A stretch of DNA of 64,000 nt from Blastocladiella emersonii ATCC 22665. Lineage: Eukaryota; Fungi; Blastocladiomycota. A model generated the notes under the pieces. The model was given only the letters and a program-made list of their open reading frames with translations. It ran no database searches and was not told the origin of the DNA. Location: NCBI GenBank assembly GCA_025594325.1, contig JANHCV010000001.1, positions 2,108,001 to 2,172,000 on the forward strand, read 5' to 3'. Below, piece after piece: positions 31-12,571 of this stretch. The position numbers and the translations under genes are program-made. Position 1 is the stretch's first letter; each line of letters starts with the position of its first letter.

Positions 31-3000
31 CTAGAGCGCCTTGGCGCTCCGGGTCCCGACCGTCACGGTCGCGCTCCCGACACCATCTTGGCGGTCGGGG
101 GTGGTTGGTGGGTGGGCCGGCGCAGGGGCCGCCGGCGACGTGGCGAGGTGCACCACAGCTGGCGATCCGGCAGCGGCGGCGTGGGCAGCAGCTGCAGGGG
201 GCAGCAGCGACAGGTAGGGGGCCGGTGGTGGCGGGCCAGCGCGCGCGTACGTGGACGCAGGCGAGGGCGAGGGTGTCGACAGCTTGATGGCGGCCGGCGA
301 GTAGGCGGGGGTGCGCGAGGATGAGGGCTCCGACAGCCACGCCAGCAGCGACGATGATGACGGTGATGAGGCGGCGCGCTGGGCGGACGCCGACGGCGAT
401 GGCGAGGAGGGCCCATAGATGGCGTTGATCATGAAGGTCCGGTCCATCTTGCCGAAGCCCATGTCCTCGAGCTTCTTGGTCTCGGCCTTGAGCATGGCCG
501 CCTCGGCAGCTGCCCCAGCAGCAATCTTCTTGGCGAGCTTGGCGTGTGTGGCGGCGCGCGCGCTGCACATGTTGGCGAGGGTGCAGGCCTGGCCATCAAA
601 CTGGCCCCCGCAGTCGGCGCAGTCGAGCTGGGCCCCCAGGGCCTGGTAGTCGTCCATGGGCGCGTCCGAGTCGTAGTCGTCCTCAGCGTCGGACGAGTCG
701 CTGTCGGACGGCACGTAGTCGTCGTCGTCGTCCATGAGGTCCTCGTCGCCGAGGGGCCCGTACCCGTGGATGAGGACGTTGTGGAACACGGTCGCCACGT
801 CGGCCTGGATGTCCTTGAACTCCTGCTCCACCTCGGGCGCGATTGAGATGCGGCCGTCCTCCACGCCCGCTGCGAGCGCGTTGAACATGCGCCGGATGTT
901 GCGGCCAAACTCCTCGGACGCGCTGGCGGCGCCTGCCGCGCGCTCGTTGGCGAGGTCGATCTGGTCCACGAGCTTGGTGACCCGCGCCTTCTGGGCCTTG
1001 ATGGTGGCGGCGGCGTCTGCAGCTGCGGAGGCAGCAGCCCTGGCGTCAGCGGCGCCCGCGCGGCGCTTGCCCTTGCGCAGCGTGAGCTCGGCGGCCTTCT
1101 CCTCCTCGGCGAGCTTGTGGTTGGTGGCGGCGAGGGCCTCGGCCTCGGACTTGGCGCGCTCGGCGCGCGAGCGGGCAGCAGCGGCGTGCGACGCCTCGGT
1201 CTTGGCCTCGGCGGCGGCCTGGCGCGCGGCGGCCTCGGCGGCGGCGGCGTTGGCGACCTGGACGCGCGCGTGCGCCTCGGCCTCCTGCGCAGCAGCCTCG
1301 GCGGCGGCGCGCGCGGTCCCGGACAACCTGGGCGGCAGCTGCCGCAATCCCAGCGAGCGCCGCGGCGGCCTCGCCGTCGCTGGCGCTGCCTGCGGGCGGC
1401 GCGGGCGACGCGGCGGTGGCGGACGACGACGCAGCAGCAGCCTCGTCAGTGCTGGGTGCTGTTGCAGTCACGCCCTCCATGGACTCGGCGCCGTCCGCGC
1501 CCTCGGCGGCAGCAGCCGTAGCAGCGGCGGCAGCACGTACCGCGTCAATCGCGTCCTTGGCGGCGGCGTGGGCCGCAGTGCGCTGGGCAATGGCCTCGGC
1601 GGCGGCGCGCTCGGCCGTGGCGAGGTTGATGATGGTGGTCGCGAGCTTGGACGCAGCGGCCGCTTCCGCCGAGACCGCACCCACCTGGCACGCGAGGGTC
1701 TGGAACAGGGCCTTGGCCTCGGCAGAGGCGGGGCCGTCAGGGAGGCAGCCATACCGGCGGCCGAACGCGGCGAGCGGGCCCTCCTCGCGCGCAGCGGCCG
1801 CGGCGAGGTCGAGCGTCATGGGGAGCGTGGCCTTGGCGAGCGACGACGCGAGCGAGACGGCGGCGCTGGCGGCGCGCGCGGGCGCGGGCGTGGGCGCGGG
1901 CGAGGAGGAGGTGACGACCTTGGACCAGGACAAACCTGGACCGGCGCGACCCGCAGGCGAGACAGTCGCCGACGGCGTGACGACCATGCCGTCGCGCTGG
2001 CGCTTGCGCGACGACGTGGACGTGTTGCTGGCGTTGGAGGGTCGCGACGACGGCGGCGACGGCCTGGGCTTGCGCGTGGAGCGGCGGACCGGGTTGGCGG
2101 GGTTCTCGGCGTTGCACAACGCGGACCAGTGCGCGTTGGACCCGCAGCAGTGGCAGCACCGCTCGCCGTCCTTGCGCAGGAAGACGGACGTGCCCTTCAT
2201 GGGGAGGACGCCCATCCTGAGACCGTCCTGGACGTCCTCGGGCAGCGGCATGCGGACGCACGCAGTGCGCGTCAGGCGCTCCTCGCCCGAGCGGAGCGCG
2301 CGGCGCACGCGCACGCCATGCAGCTTGACGCCCATGCTTTCAAAGTAGTCGTACAGCACGCCCTCGGTGGTGCCGGCGGGCAGGCCGTGGAGCCAGAGCG
2401 AGTTGGGCACCGTGTACCCGCGGCGGTCCTTTTGCACGACTGTGGCGTCGAACGAGATGGCGCAGTCGTTGATGACGGAGCAGCGGACGTCGTGGATGAG
2501 CGAGAGCGCGTCGTGGCGGGGCAGGAGGAGCGACGCGGTGCGGGTGCGACCGGGGTCGGGCTTGTCGAGGGAGAGGAGCGCGGCGCGCGTCTCGCTGCCG
2601 ATCGCGTACTGGACCAGCAGCGACATGAGCAGCTCGCCTGACCACGCATCGGGGACGTTGGAGACGATGACCTTGGCGTACATGTGGCCGACGCGGTTCT
2701 CGGTCGCGTCGCGCGGGACCAGGTCCTGGCCGACCCTGCCGCCGGTGGTGGTGCACTTGGTGCCGGGGCCAATGGGCAGCCCGCCGCGCATGACCCACTG
2801 CGCGGACGCGAGCTTGCGGAAGCGGGCGTGGACGTAGTTGCCGTCGGTCCAGTGCACGGTGCGGACCGAGCGGATGCCTTCGCGCAGGCCCATGTGCGAG
2901 AGCTTGTCCGTGATGAGCTCCTCGACGGTGAGGGACGGCTGGCACAGCTCCTTGGCGGGGGTGCCGGCGGGGCGGACGTCGGCGACGCGGAACGCGAGCG

Positions 3001-3361
3001 TGTACTGCTCCGAGGCGGGGAACGGGTCTTGCGCATGGACGAGTTGGTGCGCCGCGGGCGGGTACTCTTCGTTGTAGAAGCCCTCAGCGGGCGAGGGGGG
3101 AGAGGGGGAGAGGGCACTGTGGAGGGTGGCGTCGGGCCGCGCACCAGCCGCAGCAGTGGCTGTGGCGTCGGTTGTTGATGCTGAGGGCGAGGTGGTCGAT
3201 ACATCCTCGTCCATGGGAGCCGGCGACGACGACAACAACGACGACGACGAGGACGACGTCGCCGTGGTGGCGGCCGGGTCAGGGGGCGCAGGGGTGGGGG
3301 CAGCGGGGCCGCCGTCGCGAGCCGCGACGACGACGCCACCACCACCACTTGACGCCTCCAT
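31..3361 (-). CDS. gag/LINE-ORF1-like protein (three RRM-like segments, CCHC zinc knuckle, Ala-rich coiled coil, acidic/Cys-rich C-terminus), interrupted by one frameshift at ~1318-1320
   Basis: The 1046..3547 frame from ATG 3361 (MEASSGG) has RRM-like blocks (YVHARFRKLASAQWVM; KVIVSNVPDAW; SLWLHGLPAGTTEGVLYDYF) and C-H-C-C-G-S-N-A-H-W-S-A-L-C, which is CX2CX4HX4C. Removing one base from the CCC run at 1318-1320 joins it to the 31..1347 frame (…AQVVR|TARAAAEAAAQEAE…). No RT or integrase is seen in the window. Confidence 0.55.
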
Positions 3362-3467
3362 CTCGAGATTTTTGGAGGGGTGTTGATGCGTTGCGTAGAT
3401 TACGTTGCAGGGAGTGGTGGGAAAGACCAAAGGTGGTATGAGGTCAGCCAGCGGAATGGCGAGAGGT

Positions 3468-3549
3468 GATGGCGTGTCCGAGTGGTCTAAGGAGAATGCC
3501 TTGAAAGCATTTAGGCTTGCCTGCGCAGGTTCGAACCCTGCCGCCATCG
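3468..3549 (+). tRNA. tRNA-Ser(UGA), intact, intronless, with long variable arm
   Basis: Acceptor stem GATGGCG/CGCCATC with discriminator G; A-box TGTCCGAGTGG; anticodon arm AATGC-CTTGAAA-GCATT (TGA at 3502-3504); variable arm AGGC-TT-GCCT; T arm GCAGG-TTCGAAC-CCTGC. Confidence 0.95.
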
Positions 3550-3699
3550 TTTTTGCGCTCTCTGAGGTCCCTAATCATCTTTTAGATCATGCTTTTGGCT
3601 CCAGGGAGTCGAGATCAAGTCGAAAACGCGTCCGGGATGGTCGCTGGCGGCCACGGTCGCCGTGGGCTGACCCCATGCGGTGGCTTGCCCCCTTTTGTT
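3498..3699 (+). repeat. Direct repeat copy 1 (tRNA-Ser 3' part plus ~150 bp downstream flank)
   Basis: 3512-3549 is identical to 10313-10350 (38 nt) and 3618-3653 is identical to 10419-10454 (36 nt). Shorter shared blocks: AGATCATG(C)TTTTGGC, GGGCTGAC, GTGGCTTGC, CTTTTGTT. Confidence 0.9.
3550..3554 (+). terminator. Pol III terminator (T5) of tRNA-Ser
   Basis: TTTTT immediately follows the discriminator base. Confidence 0.8.
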
Positions 3700-4161
3700 C
3701 CACCACCTCACGACGACACCGGCTGTTCTGATTCCACTGAACGTATTCGGGCTACAAACCGGCACAGCAGCAGCAGGGGGACTTGGTGGCGGCAGCGGAT
3801 GCGAGTGATATTCCTTGCCGCGGGAGTTGCATCAACCGCTTCAGCTAGCCCTCGCCGCCCTGGCGCCGCACGTTGAATCAGGCGATGTTGAAGCGCATGT
3901 TTGTGGTGCATTGTTCTTTCAACAAACGAGTATAGAAACGTCCGGATGGGGTCGGGGTTAACGTGTCGAAAGTGGTTTGATCAAGCCTGCTCAAGTCACG
4001 TTGTGGCGCAACGCGTCAATTTCGGCTCGCGCGTCGCACGCTCAATTCACTATCGCCCTATCTGTTCAGCTGTTGTGGTGATGATTGCATCAGAAACCAA
4101 TCACTAACATGTTCAGAAACCCCTTGACGCGTATATTCAAAAAAACCGAAAGACGACCTGC

Positions 4162-6744
4162 TCACTCATTGTGGGAACGGCGCGAGCGTTTCTTACTCGG
4201 ACCACTAGTCCCCGTGGGCGAATCGATGGTACCCGCCACATGCACAACCCTTGGCGCCGAGGGCGTGCGAGAGTTCGATCCAGCAGTCAATGCCGCGACT
4301 GCGCTCGACTGATGAATAACCGGCGAGGGAGCGGCCCCAGCCCAGGCCGGAGCTGTCGCCGGCCGGCTGGGCGTCGAACGTCTCGGAGGCTCGATGAGCG
4401 GCCGGGAAGGTGCGGCATGAGCTAGAAGCTGCTTCTCGCCCACAACCTTGATGACGGCCTTGGTGGCAGCCTCAGAAGCAAGCTCCTCGAGCTTGCGCTG
4501 GGAAATGCAGACGAGAGGCTCGCCGTTTTCGTCAACCAAATCCCGTGCCGCCGGGGCACGACCACGGGATTGCCGAGGACCGTTCCCCAAGCGAGCGGGC
4601 GGCTGCGAGATTGCATTAGAACCGGCGTGCACCTTGGCAGGCGTCGCGGGCGTCGAAAGAGTCGATGCGGCCTTAGGTTCAGCCCAGCAGAGCACGTTAC
4701 GGCCATCGAAGATGGGGTAGTCGCTGGCGGTGCCCGCACGCGTGCACGCCACGTACTTCTCCGATTTGAACGCGGGCAAGTGGACCGCGTTCATCGGAAC
4801 CTCGCCCTTCGATTTGGGCTCGCGCGTCGGTTTGAGCCGAAACCCATACGACGTGTCGTGCCACTGAAGCGAACGAAGCGCATTCGACACCTGGTCGTGC
4901 GTGAACATTTGGTCGGCCGGGCAAAGCTCAATTGCAACAGAGCTGGCCAGACGGCCCATTTCCATGGCACGCAGCTGGCCGTCGGACATGGAGAGAAAAG
5001 GGGCAATGGCCCACACGGTCGCGAAGCGGATGATCACGGCCTTCAAACAGCTGTTGGGATCTGCTGCAAGATCGCGGAGAAGTTTCGTCGCGTCAGCAAA
5101 CACGCCGGGCGGCGGACGGGCAAGTCGAGGTGAGACGTCGTTGCGGTCGTCGTATGAAGGCTTGATGTACATGAGGTCCGCCTCGGTAATGGGCTGAGAG
5201 TTTTCGGGAGCGTAAACGTGGTACAGGGACCAAGCAATCTCGACCGTGACAAGCTCTGCACCCTCACTACAAAAAAAAACAAACGATACAGGTAAGCGAT
5301 CGGGTTTCGAGCGAATTAGGAGCGTATCCATAGCGTACTTGGTCTCCAGGGCAAGACCAAGGTCGTCCAAAGTTCGCTGCGTCTGAACCAGTCCCAAGCG
5401 GCAATTGAGAAAGCAATCGCCGCACAAGAGGTTCGGCACGTTGAGATTGACATTCTCGCGCAGAAATGCCATTTTGAGCCGATGCAGCGATTTGAACTCC
5501 TCGAAAGTCATGTTTGGATCGACTTCGAGGTCCTCGATCTGCAAAACGAAAGCGTAAGGTTTGAGAGGATTGTAAGCGTGGGCAGGTTGGTCCATGATTT
5601 GGGGCAGCAACATGCGCCCAAGAATCTCGTCCACAAAGTCGGGAATGGTCAGGCCGCACCTCCAGTCGTAGACGGCGTGCGTAAGCGCGTAGAGCTCGCG
5701 GCCCCACAACGAGGTTTTGAAGTACTGAGCGCCTCGGTCTGGTCGCACTGCAGGATAGCCCGATTTAGACGTGATGGTTGGCTCGGTGTCGGTGAGGTAC
5801 AATAGAGACATCCGACGCATGTCCTTGAGCAGCCCGGTGAACACGTCACGGTCCGGGAAGGTGAGGGGTGATGGAAAATTGCGTAGCGAGTCAAAATCGT
5901 GGCGGGCGACCGAGCGGATCACGACCTTGCCGTCGAGCGGAGAGCAGTCAATTTCGACACGCGGTACATCGGCCCCTGGCATCGAGTAGCTCGCGGCCGC
6001 GGCCGCTGAAGCATTAGCAAGGTCGGCATCTAGATGTAGAGAGGGAGAGCGGTGAGTGAGATGATGACGCGGAATCCAGGGCTTCTCGCGAGCCGTACCC
6101 ATGGATTCCATAAATGTCTGGTGGGCCGGCAGCACCGACAATTTGGAGGCGACCTCGGCCGAGCCGAAGATCGCGGCCGCATCCGTGGGTGGTCGGTCAA
6201 AGAGCAAGAGCAGGAGCGCGGGTTCGAAGGCCTGGTCGATATAGAACGATGAGAATAAATCGCGCCAAAGTCGGCCGTGGGAACCAAAATGAGCACGCTC
6301 GAGATCATGGCGTGCAGCGAAGTTCATCACAAGCGTCGATGCGAGCGGGAGTTGGGTCAGCCGAGCCGCGGCTGCCCAGTCCCGAACGCCAAAGTCGCGC
6401 GCAAACGTGTCGCGAAGCCCGGTCCGAGAGATGGGGAAGCCAATTAGGGTGGCGGCCGAGCACAAAGATGTGAGGTTCGTGAAATTGACATCGATGACTT
6501 TGAGAGCTGGGCGGTGACGAGACGCGCCAGCAGCGGCGGCCGACGCGGCACCGCCCTCGGTCATGTTAGCATCGGAGCTCGAAGCGGATCCCGGTGCGCC
6601 ACCGCCACCGGAGCCGTTGATGTGGATGCGCATCGCGAGAACGGCAGCCGGCAAGGCAGCCGCCTCGTCAAGATCAGCGCGGCGGGCCTCCGGGACCAAG
6701 CTGCATGGGGGTTGAGTCCTGACCTGATTCATGGTTTGCTTCAT
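4162..6744 (-). CDS. 860-aa intronless orphan protein, possibly TE-derived, with weak RRM-like segments and a C-terminal basic NLS-like KKRSRR
   Basis: Long ORF of complex (non-shadow) composition with visibly lower GC and more A/T-ending codons than neighbouring genes. No DDE, tyrosine-recombinase, HUH or RT motif recognised. Confidence 0.7.
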   Translation of the reverse strand: MKQTMNQVRTQPPCSLVPEARRADLDEAAALPAAVLAMRIHINGSGGGGAPGSASSSDANMTEGGAASAAAAGASRHRPALKVIDVNFTNLTSLCSAATLIGFPISRTGLRDTFARDFGVRDWAAAARLTQLPLASTLVMNFAARHDLERAHFGSHGRLWRDLFSSFYIDQAFEPALLLLLFDRPPTDAAAIFGSAEVASKLSVLPAHQTFMESMGTAREKPWIPRHHLTHRSPSLHLDADLANASAAAAASYSMPGADVPRVEIDCSPLDGKVVIRSVARHDFDSLRNFPSPLTFPDRDVFTGLLKDMRRMSLLYLTDTEPTITSKSGYPAVRPDRGAQYFKTSLWGRELYALTHAVYDWRCGLTIPDFVDEILGRMLLPQIMDQPAHAYNPLKPYAFVLQIEDLEVDPNMTFEEFKSLHRLKMAFLRENVNLNVPNLLCGDCFLNCRLGLVQTQRTLDDLGLALETKYAMDTLLIRSKPDRLPVSFVFFCSEGAELVTVEIAWSLYHVYAPENSQPITEADLMYIKPSYDDRNDVSPRLARPPPGVFADATKLLRDLAADPNSCLKAVIIRFATVWAIAPFLSMSDGQLRAMEMGRLASSVAIELCPADQMFTHDQVSNALRSLQWHDTSYGFRLKPTREPKSKGEVPMNAVHLPAFKSEKYVACTRAGTASDYPIFDGRNVLCWAEPKAASTLSTPATPAKVHAGSNAISQPPARLGNGPRQSRGRAPAARDLVDENGEPLVCISQRKLEELASEAATKAVIKVVGEKQLLAHAAPSRPLIEPPRRSTPSRPATAPAWAGAAPSPVIHQSSAVAALTAGSNSRTPSAPRVVHVAGTIDSPTGTSGPSKKRSRRSHNE

Positions 6745-7037
6745 GGTAGCCAGTTCATCAAGTGGAGCAAGCTGATTCGAAGCCCGACGGCAGATGGGGG
6801 TGGGCGAGGGGAGGCCGACGCGCGGCGCGGCGCGCGGGGGAGGCGCGTCGGGCAGCGTGGTGGCTCACGCGCCGCCAACGTGTCGCCAACGCGTGCTCGC
6901 GCGGGCACGCGTTGCTTTCGCCGCTCCTCTCCCCGCATCGGATAAGGCGGGCCGTACGAAAAGCGGCCGCACCCCCACCACCCCGCGCTCTCCCTCCGGC
7001 CCGTGCGACCGCGTCCACCTCCGGCACTCATCCCGCC

Positions 7038-10007
7038 ATGTCGATGCATCCCCGCCCTCTCCCGAAGCCGCCGCCACCGCCGCCGCCGCCACTGCGACCG
7101 ACGTTCGCGCCGGACACGCCGTCCAAGCTGCGCCGCACCATGATGCGCAACTACCGGCGCGACACCAAGCGGTACTACGCCATGTACCCCGACGCGCCGC
7201 GGCGCGGCTCGCCGTGTCACGGCCGACGACGACAACCGCCGCCCACGCTGCCCCGCGAGCTGTTCCCGCCGCGCCCCAACCTGGCCGGGTGCTCCGCGGC
7301 CACCCGCCGCACTCGGATGCGCAAGTGGTACCGCAAGGTCGCCAGGTGGTGCGGTACGCGCAAGCGGTCGCCTTATGTACGTCATCGTGCACGGCGTCGT
7401 GGCCTCGCTCGCATCGACACCCCACGCTGACCGTGGCAACCCTTGTCTCACACCCATAGCCTGTTCCCCGCGACCTGTTCGACGTCGGCACTCGAGTCGA
7501 CGCGACACCCGACGAGAGAATCGCCTCCCTCGTAGCTCGGCGAGCGCGCATGGTGCGTTTTCGACGCGTCGCGATGCGTCCGCGACGGATGACTGATCGT
7601 TGCTGCCTCCCTCCTCGCTCCTCTCCCTCCTCGTTCCTCTCGCTCGACGTTCCTTCAGTGCGAAAACCCCGACCAGTCGCACCTCATGCTCCGCAAGTCC
7701 GTCGGTGATCAAGATGGACCCGCCCGACTGGCTCCTCGACCAGGCGAGCCGACGGGCCCGGACCCCGCGCTCGGGATCGGCCAAGGCCGGTACGCGACCG
7801 TCGTGGTCCCGCTCGACCAGCTCCTCGCCGACGACGTGGCCGAGGAGGGCGGCGTCGAGAAGCTGCGCGTCGGCATCGCCACCCTGCTCCAGATCCACGC
7901 CGAGGGCGAGCTCGTGCTGTCGATGCACCTCGGCGAGCTCGTGCGCCGCGGCATCCCCATCAACGCCGGCCTGTCCCAGGACCACTTCTACCACATCTAC
8001 ATGGGCGTCAGCTGCATCCGCTCCGAAAATGACGACGAGACCGAGATCGTCCCGACCAAGATCACCTCGGACGACATCCTCAACGTGTCGCTCGCCCGCT
8101 ACCACGAAAAGGTGCGCAAGACGGACCTCCCGGTCCCGTCGCGCAAGAAGCTCTCGGTCGCCCTGCACCTGATGTCGCGCGAGCGCTGGACCAGTATTGT
8201 CACGGCGGCGAACCTGCGCCTTCTCGACGGTCGCGCCGCCATGGCCGTGCAGATCCGCGCTCGCTGGACCCGCGCCTACAAGCTGGTCCTCGCTCACGCC
8301 GCAGAGTCGGGCGAGCCCGTGCCGGAGCCGACGACCGCCTACTTCCTCAACCTCGACCTCGCGCAGTTCGCCGACGAGCTCGACCAGCGCTGCTCGCGGG
8401 CCGGTACGCTGTCCACGGCGACGATCGAGGCCATGGACCGCGCCGTGTGGCAGCTCATGGCCAATGTCGGCGCCTACTTGTACGACGAGAACAGCAGCGA
8501 CAAGGAGAAGCCCCTCGCCCTGCTCGACTCGTACATTTGCGCCATCGACCACCTCAAGTCGACGTACCACCTCTCGGCCTCGTTTCTGCGCCCCTCGCTC
8601 ATCCCTCTCGCCGAATCATTCGATCGCTTCATCCGCCTCAACCTGCACGCCCTCACCAACATCCTCAAGCTGTCGTGGTCCGAGTTCAAGGGCACCAAGG
8701 GGCTCGCCAAGGACCCCGCGGTCCTCAAGCGCCTGTGGGACGCCAAGGTCAAGGCCGCCGAGAAGCTCATCAAGCCCAAGTACATCTACTCGTACGACCA
8801 CGCCACCAACTCGTTCACGAACCTGTTCTCGGGCGCCATGTTCGTCGACCGCGAGACGGCGCACCTGGTCATGTACCGCGGCGGCATGCTGCCGAGTAAC
8901 AGCGGCGCAGCGGGAAGCGCCGCCGTCTCGCGGGCGCGCACGCTCCAGGAGCGCGCCCGCGAGCTGCGGCAGGCCAACCGCCCGCCGCCGACGCGAATCC
9001 GCGTCCCCGCGGGCAACCTCATCCTCGCCGCCGACCCGGGTGGGACCAAGATGGAGACGTGCCTCGTCATGACGCCCGAGAAGGCGCTCGAGCTCAAGCA
9101 CATCACCGAGCACTCGATCGACGCGACCCAGCACGCGGCGTCGGCGGGCGCGACGGCCGCGGACATGGCGGCCGCAGTCGATGCGCAGGCGGTGAGTCGC
9201 AGCAGTGTCGGTTACGTGGTGTCGACGCGTGGCGGCGTGCTCGGCGACTTCAAGTTCGTCGACTGGACGCCCGGCGCGTGGCACCAGTACGCCGGCGGCC
9301 GGCTGGCCCAGCAGCTCAAGAAGAAGTGGCTCGACAAGAACGGCCTCGACGAGGCGTACCGCCTGCTCAAGGAGTCGGCTGCCAGCGACCACAACCGGTC
9401 GACGGTGCCCATCGAGGTGCGCTCCCAGAACATGAAGGTGCTCCTCGCGGCGGCGCTCTGCCCGCAGGTCGGGTGGCTGCGCCGCACCAAGATCGACATG
9501 CGCAACCGCCTGCTCGACCTGTTCGCCGTGGCGCTGCGCGGCATCACGGTGCTCTTCGGCCACTGGTACCAGTCGGGCATGTTGCGGCTCAAGTCCAAGG
9601 GCCCCGTCAAGGAGTTCCGCGACGAGATGAAGCGCCGCGGCGTCGACATCCACATCGTGGACGAGGCGTACACGAGCAAGCGATGCGCCGCGTGCTGGTC
9701 GGCGCAGCGCGGCGTCAACGGCGACTCGTTGGCCAAGGACGGCGCCTTCGACCTCAAGAACCGCGAGTACGAGGAGGACGGCGTGATCAAGAAGGAGCAC
9801 CGCGCCGTGTACTGCCGCACGTGCAAGCGCCACTACAACCGCGACCGCAACGGCGCCGCCAACATCTTCTTCAAGACGCTCCACCTGCTCGACTTTGACC
9901 AAGCCGTCGCTCCTGCCCCGCACGACGACGACGACGGCATGGACCTGGACCTGGACCTGTCCGACTTCGACATGGACGACTTCGACATGGACGACGATTT
10001 CGACTAG
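7038..10007 (+). CDS. Fz1: Fanzor (Fanzor1-type eukaryotic TnpB homolog, RNA-guided endonuclease); predicted exons 7038-7376, 7460-7552, 7659-10007 (~926 aa)
   Basis: RuvC-I ILAADPG (D at 9033-9035); LFGHW; RuvC-II IVDEAYTSKRC (E at 9663-9665, just upstream of the zinc finger, the Fanzor-type rearrangement); zinc finger CAAC…CRTC; RuvC-III NRDRNGAANI (D at 9843-9845). Two phase-0 introns (GTACGT…GCTGAC…CATAG; GTGCGT…CTGAT…TTCAG) join the exons in frame. Confidence 0.9.
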
Positions 10008-10089
10008 GTGTCGCTCGACTCGTGTACCTCTCCTCCTCATCGCTCTCCTGTGTGTCGCACTGCTCGTGTACCTCTCCTCCTCGCTCTCC
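10008..10089 (+). repeat. Imperfect ~44-bp tandem duplication directly after the Fanzor stop codon
   Basis: CTCGTGTACCTCTCCTCCTC occurs at 10019-10038 and 10063-10082, each preceded by GTGTCGC and followed by GCTCTCC. Confidence 0.8.
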
Positions 10090-10144
10090 CACTCATAACC
10101 TCCCCTCCCCTCCTCTCGCTACTCTCTCACACCCAAACCCACAA

Positions 10145-10260
10145 GGGTGACAAGTGTGCGGCAGGTGTCTCCGCGCGGGAACCTGGCTTTGCGTGTTCCC
10201 TGATCGGTTCTCTATTAGCAACCGCATGGGTGACATTCAAGACGAACTCTACCCTCAATA
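10145..10260 (+). ncRNA. Candidate Fanzor omegaRNA (scaffold plus guide)
   Basis: Lies 140-250 nt 3' of the Fanzor stop, where omegaRNAs are normally found. Stems: GGGAAC(10177-82)/GTTCCC(10195-200), CGGTT(10205-09)/AACCG(10220-24), alternative CAGGT/ACCTG and GTGCGG/CCGCAT. GGGTGACA occurs twice. Boundaries are inferred. Confidence 0.4.
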
Positions 10261-10287
10261 CATCCTCCATCACCTCCCTCATCAAAC

Positions 10288-10350
10288 TTCGCCTTGAAGC
10301 CTTGAAAGCGAATAGGCTTGCCTGCGCAGGTTCGAACCCTGCCGCCATCG
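10288..10350 (+). pseudogene. 5'-truncated tRNA-Ser(UGA) (anticodon arm to 3' end), followed by TTTT
   Basis: TTCGC-CTTGAA-GC-CTTGAAA-GCGAA, then 38 nt identical to the intact tRNA including B-box GGTTCGAACCC (10329-10339). The acceptor 5' strand, D arm and A-box are absent. An 8-bp tandem duplication GCCTTGAA is present. Confidence 0.85.
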
Positions 10351-10503
10351 TTTTGTGCCCTCCAGGCTTCCTATATCATGTCTCAGATCATGTTTTGGCC
10401 CTCGGGGGAAGGAGATCGAGTCGAAAACGCGTCCGGGATGGTCGCTGGCGGCCAAGGTGAGTGGGGGCTGACTCCCCGGCCGTAGTGGCTTGCTTCTTTT
10501 GTT
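10291..10503 (+). repeat. Direct repeat copy 2 (tRNA-Ser 3' part plus ~150 bp downstream flank)
   Basis: Same blocks as copy 1 at 3498-3699, in the same orientation and ~6.8 kb apart. Confidence 0.9.
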
Positions 10504-10856
10504 ACGCCCATCATCGGCCTGAAACAATCTCGCTTCCTTGCTTTCTCCGCTCGGGTTTGCCTTGGGGGGTTCAGGCTGGATCCAGAGTTCGGGTGGGATT
10601 CTGCGACGGTCGCTGGCCCCGAGCGAGATTCTGCTCAAGTGGGCCAACGTGGGCCTGAGTGCGTGCGGCATCGCGAATCGCATCGTTATCTTTATCGGTC
10701 GGCTGCCGGCTTTGAGGTTTGTGGGGCTTGCTGTTGTTCCCCGCCCCGCCGAGATCGCCGAGCCCCCTCGAGTTCCATCTCCGCTCTCCCTCCCACGACG
10801 ACCGCTGTATCACCCCCTACTCTCGACTCACACGTCCACACGACCCACCACTCTTG

Positions 10857-12571
10857 ATGAACGCTGCCTCTGCCATCCCGCCACCGCCTGCAGCCGCCGG
10901 AGCGGCGGTCGCTGACGCGACCACCGCTACTCTTGTCTCCACCACGATGCCCTCTGCGATGCCGGCCCAGACTCCGATGCCCGCTGCGACGGCCGTGCCG
11001 ACCCAGCTTCCGATGCAGCAGCCCGCCGCGGCGGATGCGCCCGTCTACGCCGCCGGCGGTGCGCGGCAGGCGACCACGTCGTCCCGCCGTGTGCTGCCGC
11101 CGCCCGACCACCCCGTGTCCGGCCGCAACCCGTCGCTGCAGGGGATTCGGTGCATCAACTGCCTGACGTCGACCACGCCGCTCTGGCGCCGCACTCCGGA
11201 TCAGGAGGTGTGCTGCAACGCCTGCGGTACGGTCTCTTCTGCTCCTGTTGTGTCGAGCGGAGGAACGTCCGTTTGCTCACAACCTCGCCTCTCCCTGATT
11301 GATGAACGTTTAGGCCTCTTTTTCCGGCATCACAACCAGCACCGGCCCATCACGCAGGCCGAGCGCGAGGCCAACGTGCGCGCCGCCAATGGTGGCGATG
11401 GTGGTGCCGATTCGGTCCCCGCCGCGGTCCCTCGCAGCCCGTCCCCTTCAGCGCAGGGCAGCAGTGCTGCGGGCGCCGCGACCACCTCGCCGTCGTCGCT
11501 GCCCTCGTCGTCCTCGTCGACGCCCGCCCCGCTCGAGGCGGGTGCCGTGCCGACTGCGCCTGCCGCCGTGCCAGCCAGGTCGTCGCCCCTCGCCAACGCC
11601 TCGGTCGTCGTGCCGCCTGCGGCATCGACGCAGGTCCCGAATCCGAATTCGAATCCGATACAACACGCCGCGGCGGCGGCGGTCTCGCTCCCGCCGCTCC
11701 CGCCCGTGCCGGCGGCGCCTGCTGCTGCCCCCGTCCCGGCAGCCGCTGCTCCGGCGCCTGCCCCCGCTCCGGCTTCAGCCCCGGCGCCCGCGCCCGCGCC
11801 CAAGGCGACCGAGTACCAGGCCGTGTGCAGCAACTGCGGCACCACAACGACGCCGCTGTGGCGGCGCGACACCGAGGGCCGGTGCATCTGCAACGCGTGT
11901 GGCCTGTACTTCAAGCTGCACGGCGTGCACCGCCCGATGCAGCTGAAAAAGTCGGTCATTAAACGACGTAAACGCTTACCGACGTCCAAGGAGCAGACGG
12001 GCGCCAACAAGCGCTCCAACACGGGCTCGGATCGCGCCAGTAGCTCTGGGAGCGGTGGCGGTGCACGACGTAACGGCGGCGGGGACGGCCGCTCGGGCCT
12101 CTCGCCGATCGCCGAGGGCGGTAACGCCGCCGACTCGGCCGCGTCGACCCCGCGCGGGCACGGCGGCGTCGAGGAGGCCCTGCTCTCGCTCGCGTCCGAG
12201 CCACGGCCCGGCCGCACCCCGCCCATGTCGGCCCTGACCGAGGGGTCCGCGTACGGCGGCGGCGCTCCCCAGCAGCAGCACCCGCAGCAGCACTTCCACC
12301 AGCACACGGTCCAGGGCAACTACCACGCCCAGCCGCCGCAGCAGCCTCAGCAGCATCACCACCACCACCACCACGTCCAGGCGTACCAGCACCCGCACGG
12401 CCCACCGGCCCCGCCGCAGCACGCGCAGCAGCACCCGCAGTCCAACGGCGGCGCGTACCACCACCCGGCGTCGGCGCCCAGCGGCCGCCCGTACGGCCAG
12501 GTCCAGTCGCCCCCGCCCGCGCAGCAGCCCACCGGCCCGTCGCCGTACGGCCAGACGCTCCCGCCGCCTCC

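Follow-up and report, generated by a model that had tools for sequence, protein, structure and literature searches.

To our knowledge, Fanzors are the only known RNA-guided DNA endonucleases of eukaryotes; they are under development as compact genome editors, and their natural role is unsettled. The related TnpB proteins are ~400 amino acids (aa) long, carry a glutamate at the canonical RuvC-II position and are linked to TnpA in IS200/IS605 elements. TldRs, which are domesticated TnpB regulators, have lost their catalytic residues. In Fanzors and TnpB2 the RuvC-II site is 'rearranged', with Gly or Pro at the canonical spot and an alternative Glu downstream, and the Fanzor2 proteins, which have a minimal REC region, are linked to viruses and IS607 (PMC10530073). 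SpuFz1, the Fanzor1 protein of the fungus Spizellomyces punctatus, is represented by 42 loci with ~82%-identical proteins, 30-nt inverted repeats (IRs) and a mapped 3' omegaRNA, and in Fanzor1 loci generally the omegaRNA lies at or just past the 3' end of the gene. A transposon context, made up of terminal inverted repeats (TIRs), a target-site duplication (TSD) and an associated transposase, is frequent yet non-obligatory in the Fanzor1 family. Here we analyse H9P43_000783, a 926-aa gene (annotated as a hypothetical protein) of the water fungus Blastocladiella emersonii ATCC 22665 located in a 64,000-nucleotide stretch of contig JANHCV010000001.1 (positions 2,108,001 to 2,172,000, forward strand), which we call the window and whose numbering is used throughout. 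We conclude that H9P43_000783 is, in structure and in sequence, a member of the Fanzor1 family, to which it adds an unusually divergent protein and not a new principle.

The gene occupies positions 7038-10007 of the window on the forward strand and has three exons, placed by tblastn of the protein (labelled P0001 in our alignments) onto the window:

7038..7376, forward strand: exon 1, coding for aa 1-113; rich in Pro and Arg and predicted to be disordered, with basic stretches resembling nuclear localisation signals (NLSs)
7377..7459, forward strand: predicted intron 1, GTACGT...CATAG, an interval between two matched pieces of P0001 in tblastn
7460..7552, forward strand: exon 2, aa 114-144
7553..7658, forward strand: predicted intron 2, GTGCGT...TTCAG
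7659..10007, forward strand: exon 3, aa 145-926 plus stop; REC-like region, WED, RuvC/TNB and acidic tail (aa 896-926)

Both predicted introns have canonical GT..AG ends, read directly from the DNA, and a 773-aa terminal open reading frame (ORF) at 7686-10007 on the forward strand equals the C-terminal 773 residues of H9P43_000783 with 100% identity. Independent short-read contigs, drawn from three DNA runs on the same sample, matched the region 4700-10328 with 0 differences and at single-copy depth. The GC contents at the first, second and third codon positions (GC1/2/3) of the gene are 0.65/0.43/0.94, the GC3 being the highest in the neighbourhood and typical of host coding DNA. Since GC2 lies far below GC3, a coding pattern has been maintained over 773 codons. 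For exon 1 the in-frame values are 0.64/0.69/0.88, and the predicted local distance difference test score (pLDDT) of the structural model described below is <50 over most of this exon. As far as sequence can tell, the gene is real and undamaged in B. emersonii and encodes a Fanzor1-like (eukaryotic TnpB-type) nuclease. A preliminary description of the locus had proposed the same coordinates, a length of ~926 aa and host-like codon usage, in agreement with the annotated gene and its GC3. It had also reported an absence of stops, which is true of the spliced model and of the 773-aa frame and not of the raw interval: 7038-10007 is not a single continuous ORF, because the predicted introns hold in-frame stops.

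The C-terminal part of the protein carries the rearranged, Fanzor-type split RuvC, with D603, G778, E813 and D873 all in conserved columns:

9033..9035, forward strand: RuvC-I aspartate D603 (AADPG), nearly invariant in both alignment A2 and alignment A4
9558..9560, forward strand: G778 at the canonical RuvC-II position (FGHW), nearly invariant, a Gly substitution typical of Fanzors
9663..9665, forward strand: relocated RuvC-II glutamate E813 (VDEAYTSKRC), a conserved column 35 residues past G778
9627..9866, forward strand: TNB zinc-ribbon domain with C820, C823, C863 and C866, matching Pfam PF07282
9843..9845, forward strand: RuvC-III aspartate D873 (NRDRNGAANI), a conserved column in the alignments

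The three acidic residues D603, E813 and D873 and the four cysteines are invariant or nearly so across 24-37 aligned relatives, the cysteines being invariant and forming two CxxC pairs (C820/C823 and C863/C866). The resulting ribbon (CxxC...CxxC) sits between RuvC-II and RuvC-III, where a Fanzor1 protein must have it. The match to Pfam PF07282 (Cas12f1-like TNB) has an E of 3.3e-10 and scores 40.4 bits, the cut-off being 26.3, and the NCBIfam model guided_TnpB matches the same region with an E of 8e-7 and 28.7 bits, which is below its cut-off of 100. All motifs listed in the preliminary description (ADPG, DEAYTSKRC, CxxC…CxxC and NRDRNGAANI), together with the three acidic catalytic positions, were found on direct reading.

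A model of H9P43_000783 was built with AlphaFold2 (AF2) on a 37-sequence alignment. It has a mean pLDDT of 61.6, is confident over aa 590-890, and divides into a disordered N-terminus (aa 1-~190), a helical REC-like region (~196-446), WED strands (~521-549) and a RuvC domain with its TNB (591-890). The predicted architecture of a WED, an enlarged helical REC and a RuvC is like that of SpuFz1, and a structure of this kind had been named in the preliminary description as a check on its proposal. When the model was searched with Foldseek against the Protein Data Bank (PDB), Fanzor1 proteins led the ranking (SpuFz1 with an E of 1.1e-10, PpFz with 1e-7 and GtFz with 2e-5), followed by Cas12f (5e-4), TnpB (1.4e-2) and the mimivirus Fanzor2 (1.8e-2). 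VIA-align to SpuFz1 gave a Z of 14.0 over 314 aligned residues (model 222-890 versus chain 51-623), and the top matches among the AFDB clusters were eukaryotic TNB-domain proteins. The earlier assignment to the Fanzor1 type is supported by the PF07282 match, the intact catalytic triad and SpuFz1 as the top fold match.

SpuFz1 (PDB 8GKH, 9CEU-9CEZ) and the model share the same domain order, the helical REC, the WED strands and the split RuvC with its TNB zinc ribbon, as well as the same rearranged RuvC-II, with Gly at the canonical site and Glu in DE..TSK. The host of SpuFz1 is also a zoosporic fungus. The two proteins differ in that they are only ~13-18% identical, and in that H9P43_000783 exceeds SpuFz1 by ~290 aa, has a Pro/Arg-rich, disordered N-terminus as well as an acidic tail, and is single-copy, with no IRs or omegaRNA detected. 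The second and third best structural matches, PpFz of Parasitella parasitica (9CF0-3) and GtFz1 of Guillardia theta (9CER-T), show sequence similarity from RuvC-II to RuvC-III only, their N-terminal region being not alignable; GtFz1 resembles our gene also in having neither IRs nor an associated transposase (PMC10432273). Beyond the Fanzor1 group, TnpB of ISDra2 (8EXA, 8H1J) and Cas12f share the RuvC/TNB core fold (VIA-align Z 8-9) and the RDxNAAxNI and CxxC motifs. Fanzor2 of Acanthamoeba polyphaga mimivirus (9B0L) shares the superfamily core and the rearranged RuvC-II but ranks well below the Fanzor1 structures, with the Foldseek E given above and a Z of 10.4 at a root-mean-square deviation of 16.

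Two other classes were considered and rejected. H9P43_000783 differs from prokaryotic TnpB (IS200/IS605, IS607) in its relocated glutamate, with Gly at the canonical site, in its length of 926 aa, in its predicted introns, in the absence of TnpA and in a guided_TnpB score below the cut-off. A nuclease-dead, TldR-like derivative was set aside on the presence of D603, E813 and D873.

To place the gene within the family we ran an exhaustive phmmer search over 1.84 billion representatives, which returned 37 proteins at E <1e-3, every match being limited to the C-terminal 110-260 residues. The non-paralog sequence matches were all Fanzor1-like, and the structural ranking likewise favours Fanzor1 over Fanzor2 and TnpB. 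A profile including the non-paralog Fanzor1 relatives matched SpuFz1 at 2.7e-74. When the 773-aa ORF, the paralog profile or ORF860, a neighbouring frame described below, was used in word-indexed homolog searches, the result was the query itself or nothing. The best phmmer matches were 11 other B. emersonii proteins (E 3e-18 to 1e-4):

H9P43_003300, _004398, _006016, _003608, _007593, _004874, _002944, _004653, _002832, _002144 and _003446: B. emersonii paralogs, the closest sequence relatives

The seven best paralogs are 27-41% identical to H9P43_000783, in the C-terminal part only. A maximum-likelihood tree built on the RuvC region, without TnpB or Fanzor2 outgroups, puts the 12 B. emersonii proteins on one side of a branch with support 98/94, with H9P43_000783 as sister to the other 11 on a branch of 1.34 substitutions per site. 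On this tree of RuvC sequences it branches off first within a clade of 12 or more highly divergent B. emersonii paralogs. Neither phmmer nor tblastn in the paralog loci detected a relative of residues 1-~497. The distinct subfamily suggested in the preliminary description is matched by this sister position and by the unique N-terminal region. All three catalytic residues are kept in 10 of the 11 paralogs aligned in A4.

Each of the eight paralog loci examined holds a solo gene amid ordinary housekeeping genes, and the paralogs have a host-like GC3 (0.81-0.94). H9P43_000783 resembles them in these respects and in belonging to the same clade; it differs from them in that it alone has the unique N-terminal region of ~350 aa and adjoins a tRNA duplication and ORF860. 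No transposase Pfam match was found in the eight paralog loci, except for a weak Plavaka-like one near the paralog P0006. At that locus the gene with the weak Plavaka (CACTA-like transposase) match lies 2.5 kb upstream (L008 6301-7527), and a second Fanzor-like fragment lies on the opposite strand ~7 kb downstream (L008 18565-18921, reverse strand). Two paralogs, P0002 and P0015, have in common an N-terminal Cys-rich segment that is missing from the others, and a further one, P0024 (L009 10001-12903), has lost RuvC-I and RuvC-III. In the library searched, no publication names Fanzor together with Blastocladiella.

The reading that we favour, and hold to be fairly probable, is that H9P43_000783 encodes a long-resident, now immobile and probably still functional Fanzor1-family nuclease using an omegaRNA; its RNA guidance, its nuclease activity and its present immobility are what we infer. 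By analogy with the family, the basic N-terminus would take the protein into the nucleus, and the 3' region of the gene would supply the omegaRNA that the protein binds. The protein would then recognise a short target-adjacent motif (TAM) beside guide-complementary sequence and cut double-stranded DNA by a single RuvC site (D603/E813/D873), with the zinc ribbon in support.

Several observations weigh against this reading. The direct phmmer similarity to SpuFz1 is negligible (E 0.49), a profile of the B. emersonii paralogs alone fails to reach SpuFz1 by sequence, and the profile-profile match linking the paralogs to Fanzor1 proteins spans no more than 129 columns at the C-terminus. In the AF2 model the N-terminal half is of low to moderate confidence, and the global TM-scores to SpuFz1 are low (0.21-0.32). 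The two predicted introns and the first 153 codons draw their support from the annotation and from codon-position composition, and long frames come easily at such high GC, as seen in a 609-aa antisense ORF. Finally no omegaRNA candidate was found in the 3' region:

10008..10298, forward strand: 3' flank, the expected omegaRNA site; CT-rich, with a 31-nt direct repeat and no significant structure

Three folds of this region were about as stable as those of shuffled sequences (z +1.03, -0.26 and -0.03), and blastn found nothing that it shares with the paralog loci.

The non-coding flanks and the introns likewise had no blastn similarity to the paralog loci, and an Rfam scan gave tRNA-Ser as its only match and no guide-RNA family. 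The two units of the 31-nt direct repeat (90%) lie directly past the Fanzor stop, at 10008-10038 and 10052-10082, and the core of the repeat is complementary (23 nt, 83%) to 9656-9678, which codes for the VDEAYTSK of RuvC-II.

Some of this evidence would also suit an inactive relic, that is, a dead-end copy whose frame is open only through high GC and a recent loss of function. Neither an omegaRNA nor TIRs nor a partner was detected, the branch leading to the gene is very long (1.34 substitutions per site), and at least one paralog (P0024) is without RuvC-I and RuvC-III. Moreover the WED motif W...N.F.G...TDG, which is seen in SpuFz1 and its relatives and is recognisable in the B. emersonii paralogs, is degenerate in H9P43_000783, which has FVDRETAHLVMY where the family has TDGY.ARV. 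A relic is nevertheless difficult to reconcile with a protein that retains all seven of its catalytic and zinc residues and whose TNB domain still scores above the Pfam threshold, or with a GC2 of 0.43 far below a GC3 of 0.94 over 773 codons, and we regard it as distinctly unlikely.

The immobility that forms part of our favoured reading was judged from the hallmarks of transposition. Inverted-repeat scores were within shuffle range, both for the flanks upstream and downstream of the gene and for the edges of the island, no Pfam transposase was found within ~10 kb of the gene, and neither Pfam nor the annotation revealed a TnpA, an HUH or a serine recombinase nearby. The genome holds no near-identical copy of the gene by phmmer, and the read depth is single-copy. 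The lack of TIRs and of an adjacent transposase noted in the preliminary description was therefore confirmed, and the copy-number check that it had proposed gave a single copy; the importance that it had attached to the solo status of the gene was overstated. Saito et al. reported the GtFz1, NlovFz2 and MmeFz2 loci without IRs or transposase association, and found no transposase inside Spu-1 elements (PMC10432273). Since several characterised Fanzor loci lack them too, the missing transposase and IRs are not exceptional here (PMC10432273).

A single-copy gene without transposon hallmarks could also be a domesticated host gene, acting as an RNA-guided DNA binder, a regulator or a programmed nuclease, with the N-terminus and the acidic tail as acquired modules. 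Its GC3 of 0.94 tops the neighbourhood, its predicted introns are spliceosomal, H9P43_000783 alone has the N-terminal region of ~350 residues, and its paralogs are located among housekeeping genes. In addition the last residues of the protein, DLDLDLSDFDMDDFDMDDDFD (window 9921-10004), make up an acidic and hydrophobic tail that may resemble acidic transcription-activation domains. Yet the catalytic triad is intact, unlike that of the known domesticated TnpB regulators (TldRs), and the homolog searches found no ortholog in another species that would show conserved synteny or purifying selection. Ordinary Fanzors, moreover, also have introns, NLSs and missing transposases (PMC10432273, PMC10530073). 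Taken as a whole, domestication appears unlikely to us. A more specific form of it, in which a Fanzor with a kept active site, a lineage-specific N-terminal module and an activation-domain-like tail serves the host as an RNA-guided nuclease or regulator, we hold to be very unlikely; in a variant of this idea the guide could read into the adjacent tRNA-Ser fragment. As a separate observation, the C-terminal region of the paralog P0003 also contains an acidic stretch, of a looser kind.

The surroundings of the gene had been described as a tRNA-bounded island, for which the relevant features are:

3467..3550, forward strand: intact tRNA-Ser(UGA), found by ARAGORN and by Rfam (57.1 bits)
3498..3888, forward strand: left copy of a host segment, consisting of the tRNA 3' half, a spacer and a degenerate GATA-finger fragment (3828-3888)
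4162..6744, reverse strand: ORF860, an orphan 860-aa ORF inside the segment X defined below, divergent from the Fanzor gene across a 293-bp spacer
10299..11211, forward strand: right copy of the host segment, consisting of a 5'-truncated tRNA-Ser (10299-10351), a spacer and the start of an intact GATA-factor gene

One intact tRNA-Ser(UGA) is indeed present. The right edge holds only a 5'-truncated copy, with similarity continuing past the tRNA, and the bounds of the island are a duplication of host DNA and not two tRNA genes. The direct repeat begins in the tRNA anticodon stem at 3498 and has a spacing of 6801 bp. Its first part (3498-3699 versus 10299-10503) aligns over 208 bp at 80.8% identity with an E of 6e-44, the tRNA part alone being 95% identical, and its second part (3828-3888 versus 11151-11211) is 75% identical and scores 47 against 21 +/- 2.4 for shuffles. 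According to Pfam, 11151-11211 encodes the first of the GATA zinc fingers in the GATA-factor gene downstream; the finger is degenerate in the left copy, which has also undergone ~520 bp of deletions. The spacer copies are ~20% diverged, indicating that the duplication event is old. Homology does not extend upstream of the truncated tRNA. The read depth is ~2x on 10216-10412 and there are only two in-window copies; this depth points to a local duplication, and a dispersed SINE-like repeat after the tRNA was rejected on these grounds.

The arrangement reads 5' tRNA half, H, X, H and rest of the GATA gene, where H, at least 0.4-0.9 kb long, derives from the host and X measures ~6.4 kb. Such a layout would be expected from the single-crossover insertion of an H-carrying circle, or from insertion at a widely staggered break, and the junctions, as they can be read, are not of the attachment-site (att) or TSD type. 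A duplication of at least 200 bp that reaches the GATA fragment, and not one of 6-8 bp, is unlike a Dada-type TSD. An 8-bp tandem, GCCTTGAA GCCTTGAA, is found at 10291-10306, precisely where the truncated tRNA-Ser starts (anticodon loop), and may be junction microhomology or a footprint.

ORF860 is called as a gene nowhere in the NCBI annotation. From the stop-codon frequency we estimate that a frame of this length is very unlikely to arise by chance in 60%-GC DNA. It had no Pfam domain, no homolog, no relative in IMG/VR and no Atlas neighbour >0.59, it was absent from the eight paralog loci by tblastn, and it had no similarity to a 782-aa ORF upstream of P0003. Its single-sequence AF2 model was uninformative (pLDDT 32.7). 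Its GC3 of 0.675, compared with 0.83-0.94 in all neighbouring genes, amounts to foreign codon usage, and the contrast with the 0.94 of the Fanzor gene argues for different histories. The frame ends in a basic KKRSRR tail. ORF860 is the one candidate for a partner or mobility gene of the Fanzor gene.

If ORF860 were an unrecognised recombinase or transposase, the interval ~3889-10298 could be a composite mobile island whose target at tRNA-Ser/GATA was duplicated on entry. Entry may have been by way of a circle that carried a piece of host DNA, or by way of a staggered break, and the guide of the Fanzor may extend into the tRNA-Ser fragment. This proposal would explain why the repeat follows the A-H-X-H-R pattern expected from single-crossover integration (A being the 5' tRNA half and R the rest of the GATA gene), with a complete tRNA and a truncated GATA at the left H and a truncated tRNA and a complete GATA gene at the right one. 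It would also fit the 8-bp tandem GCCTTGAA at the truncation point and the divergence of ORF860 and the Fanzor gene from the 293-bp spacer, and tRNA-targeting DNA transposons (Dada) do exist. We nonetheless consider it highly improbable. ORF860 has no detectable homolog, domain or usable model and is absent from the eight paralog loci, the GC3 contrast argues for separate histories of the two genes, no TIRs were found, no tRNA is present at the five paralog loci scanned (L001-L005), and with copies ~20% diverged any such event would be old.

The absence of tRNAs from L001-L005 also means that tRNA linkage is not a family trait, and the idea that Fanzors of this clade target tRNA genes was rejected. 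The locus likewise lacks the features of a Dada-like or other tRNA-integrating element, having no TIRs, an ORF860 without a detectable domain and no tRNA at those five paralog loci.

Among the other neighbours, a 1099-aa gene without a Pfam domain at 31-3361 on the reverse strand ends ~106 bp from the tRNA-Ser gene, and the next gene to the left of the window (L006 464-2821) has an RNase H domain; the two might conceivably be parts of a retroelement located beside a Pol III gene. An eIF3g gene is also among the neighbours of H9P43_000783.

Our results indicate that solo Fanzor1-like genes form a deeply diverged clade private to Blastocladiella, with active sites kept and no visible transposon machinery. 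As the most divergent member of this clade, H9P43_000783 is suited to asking whether such genes are selfish relics or have a host function, and it poses a second question, namely what an omegaRNA and a TAM look like so far removed from those of SpuFz1. Were it a domesticated Fanzor, it would give eukaryotes their first counterpart of the domestications that led from TnpB to Cas12 or from TnpB to TldR.

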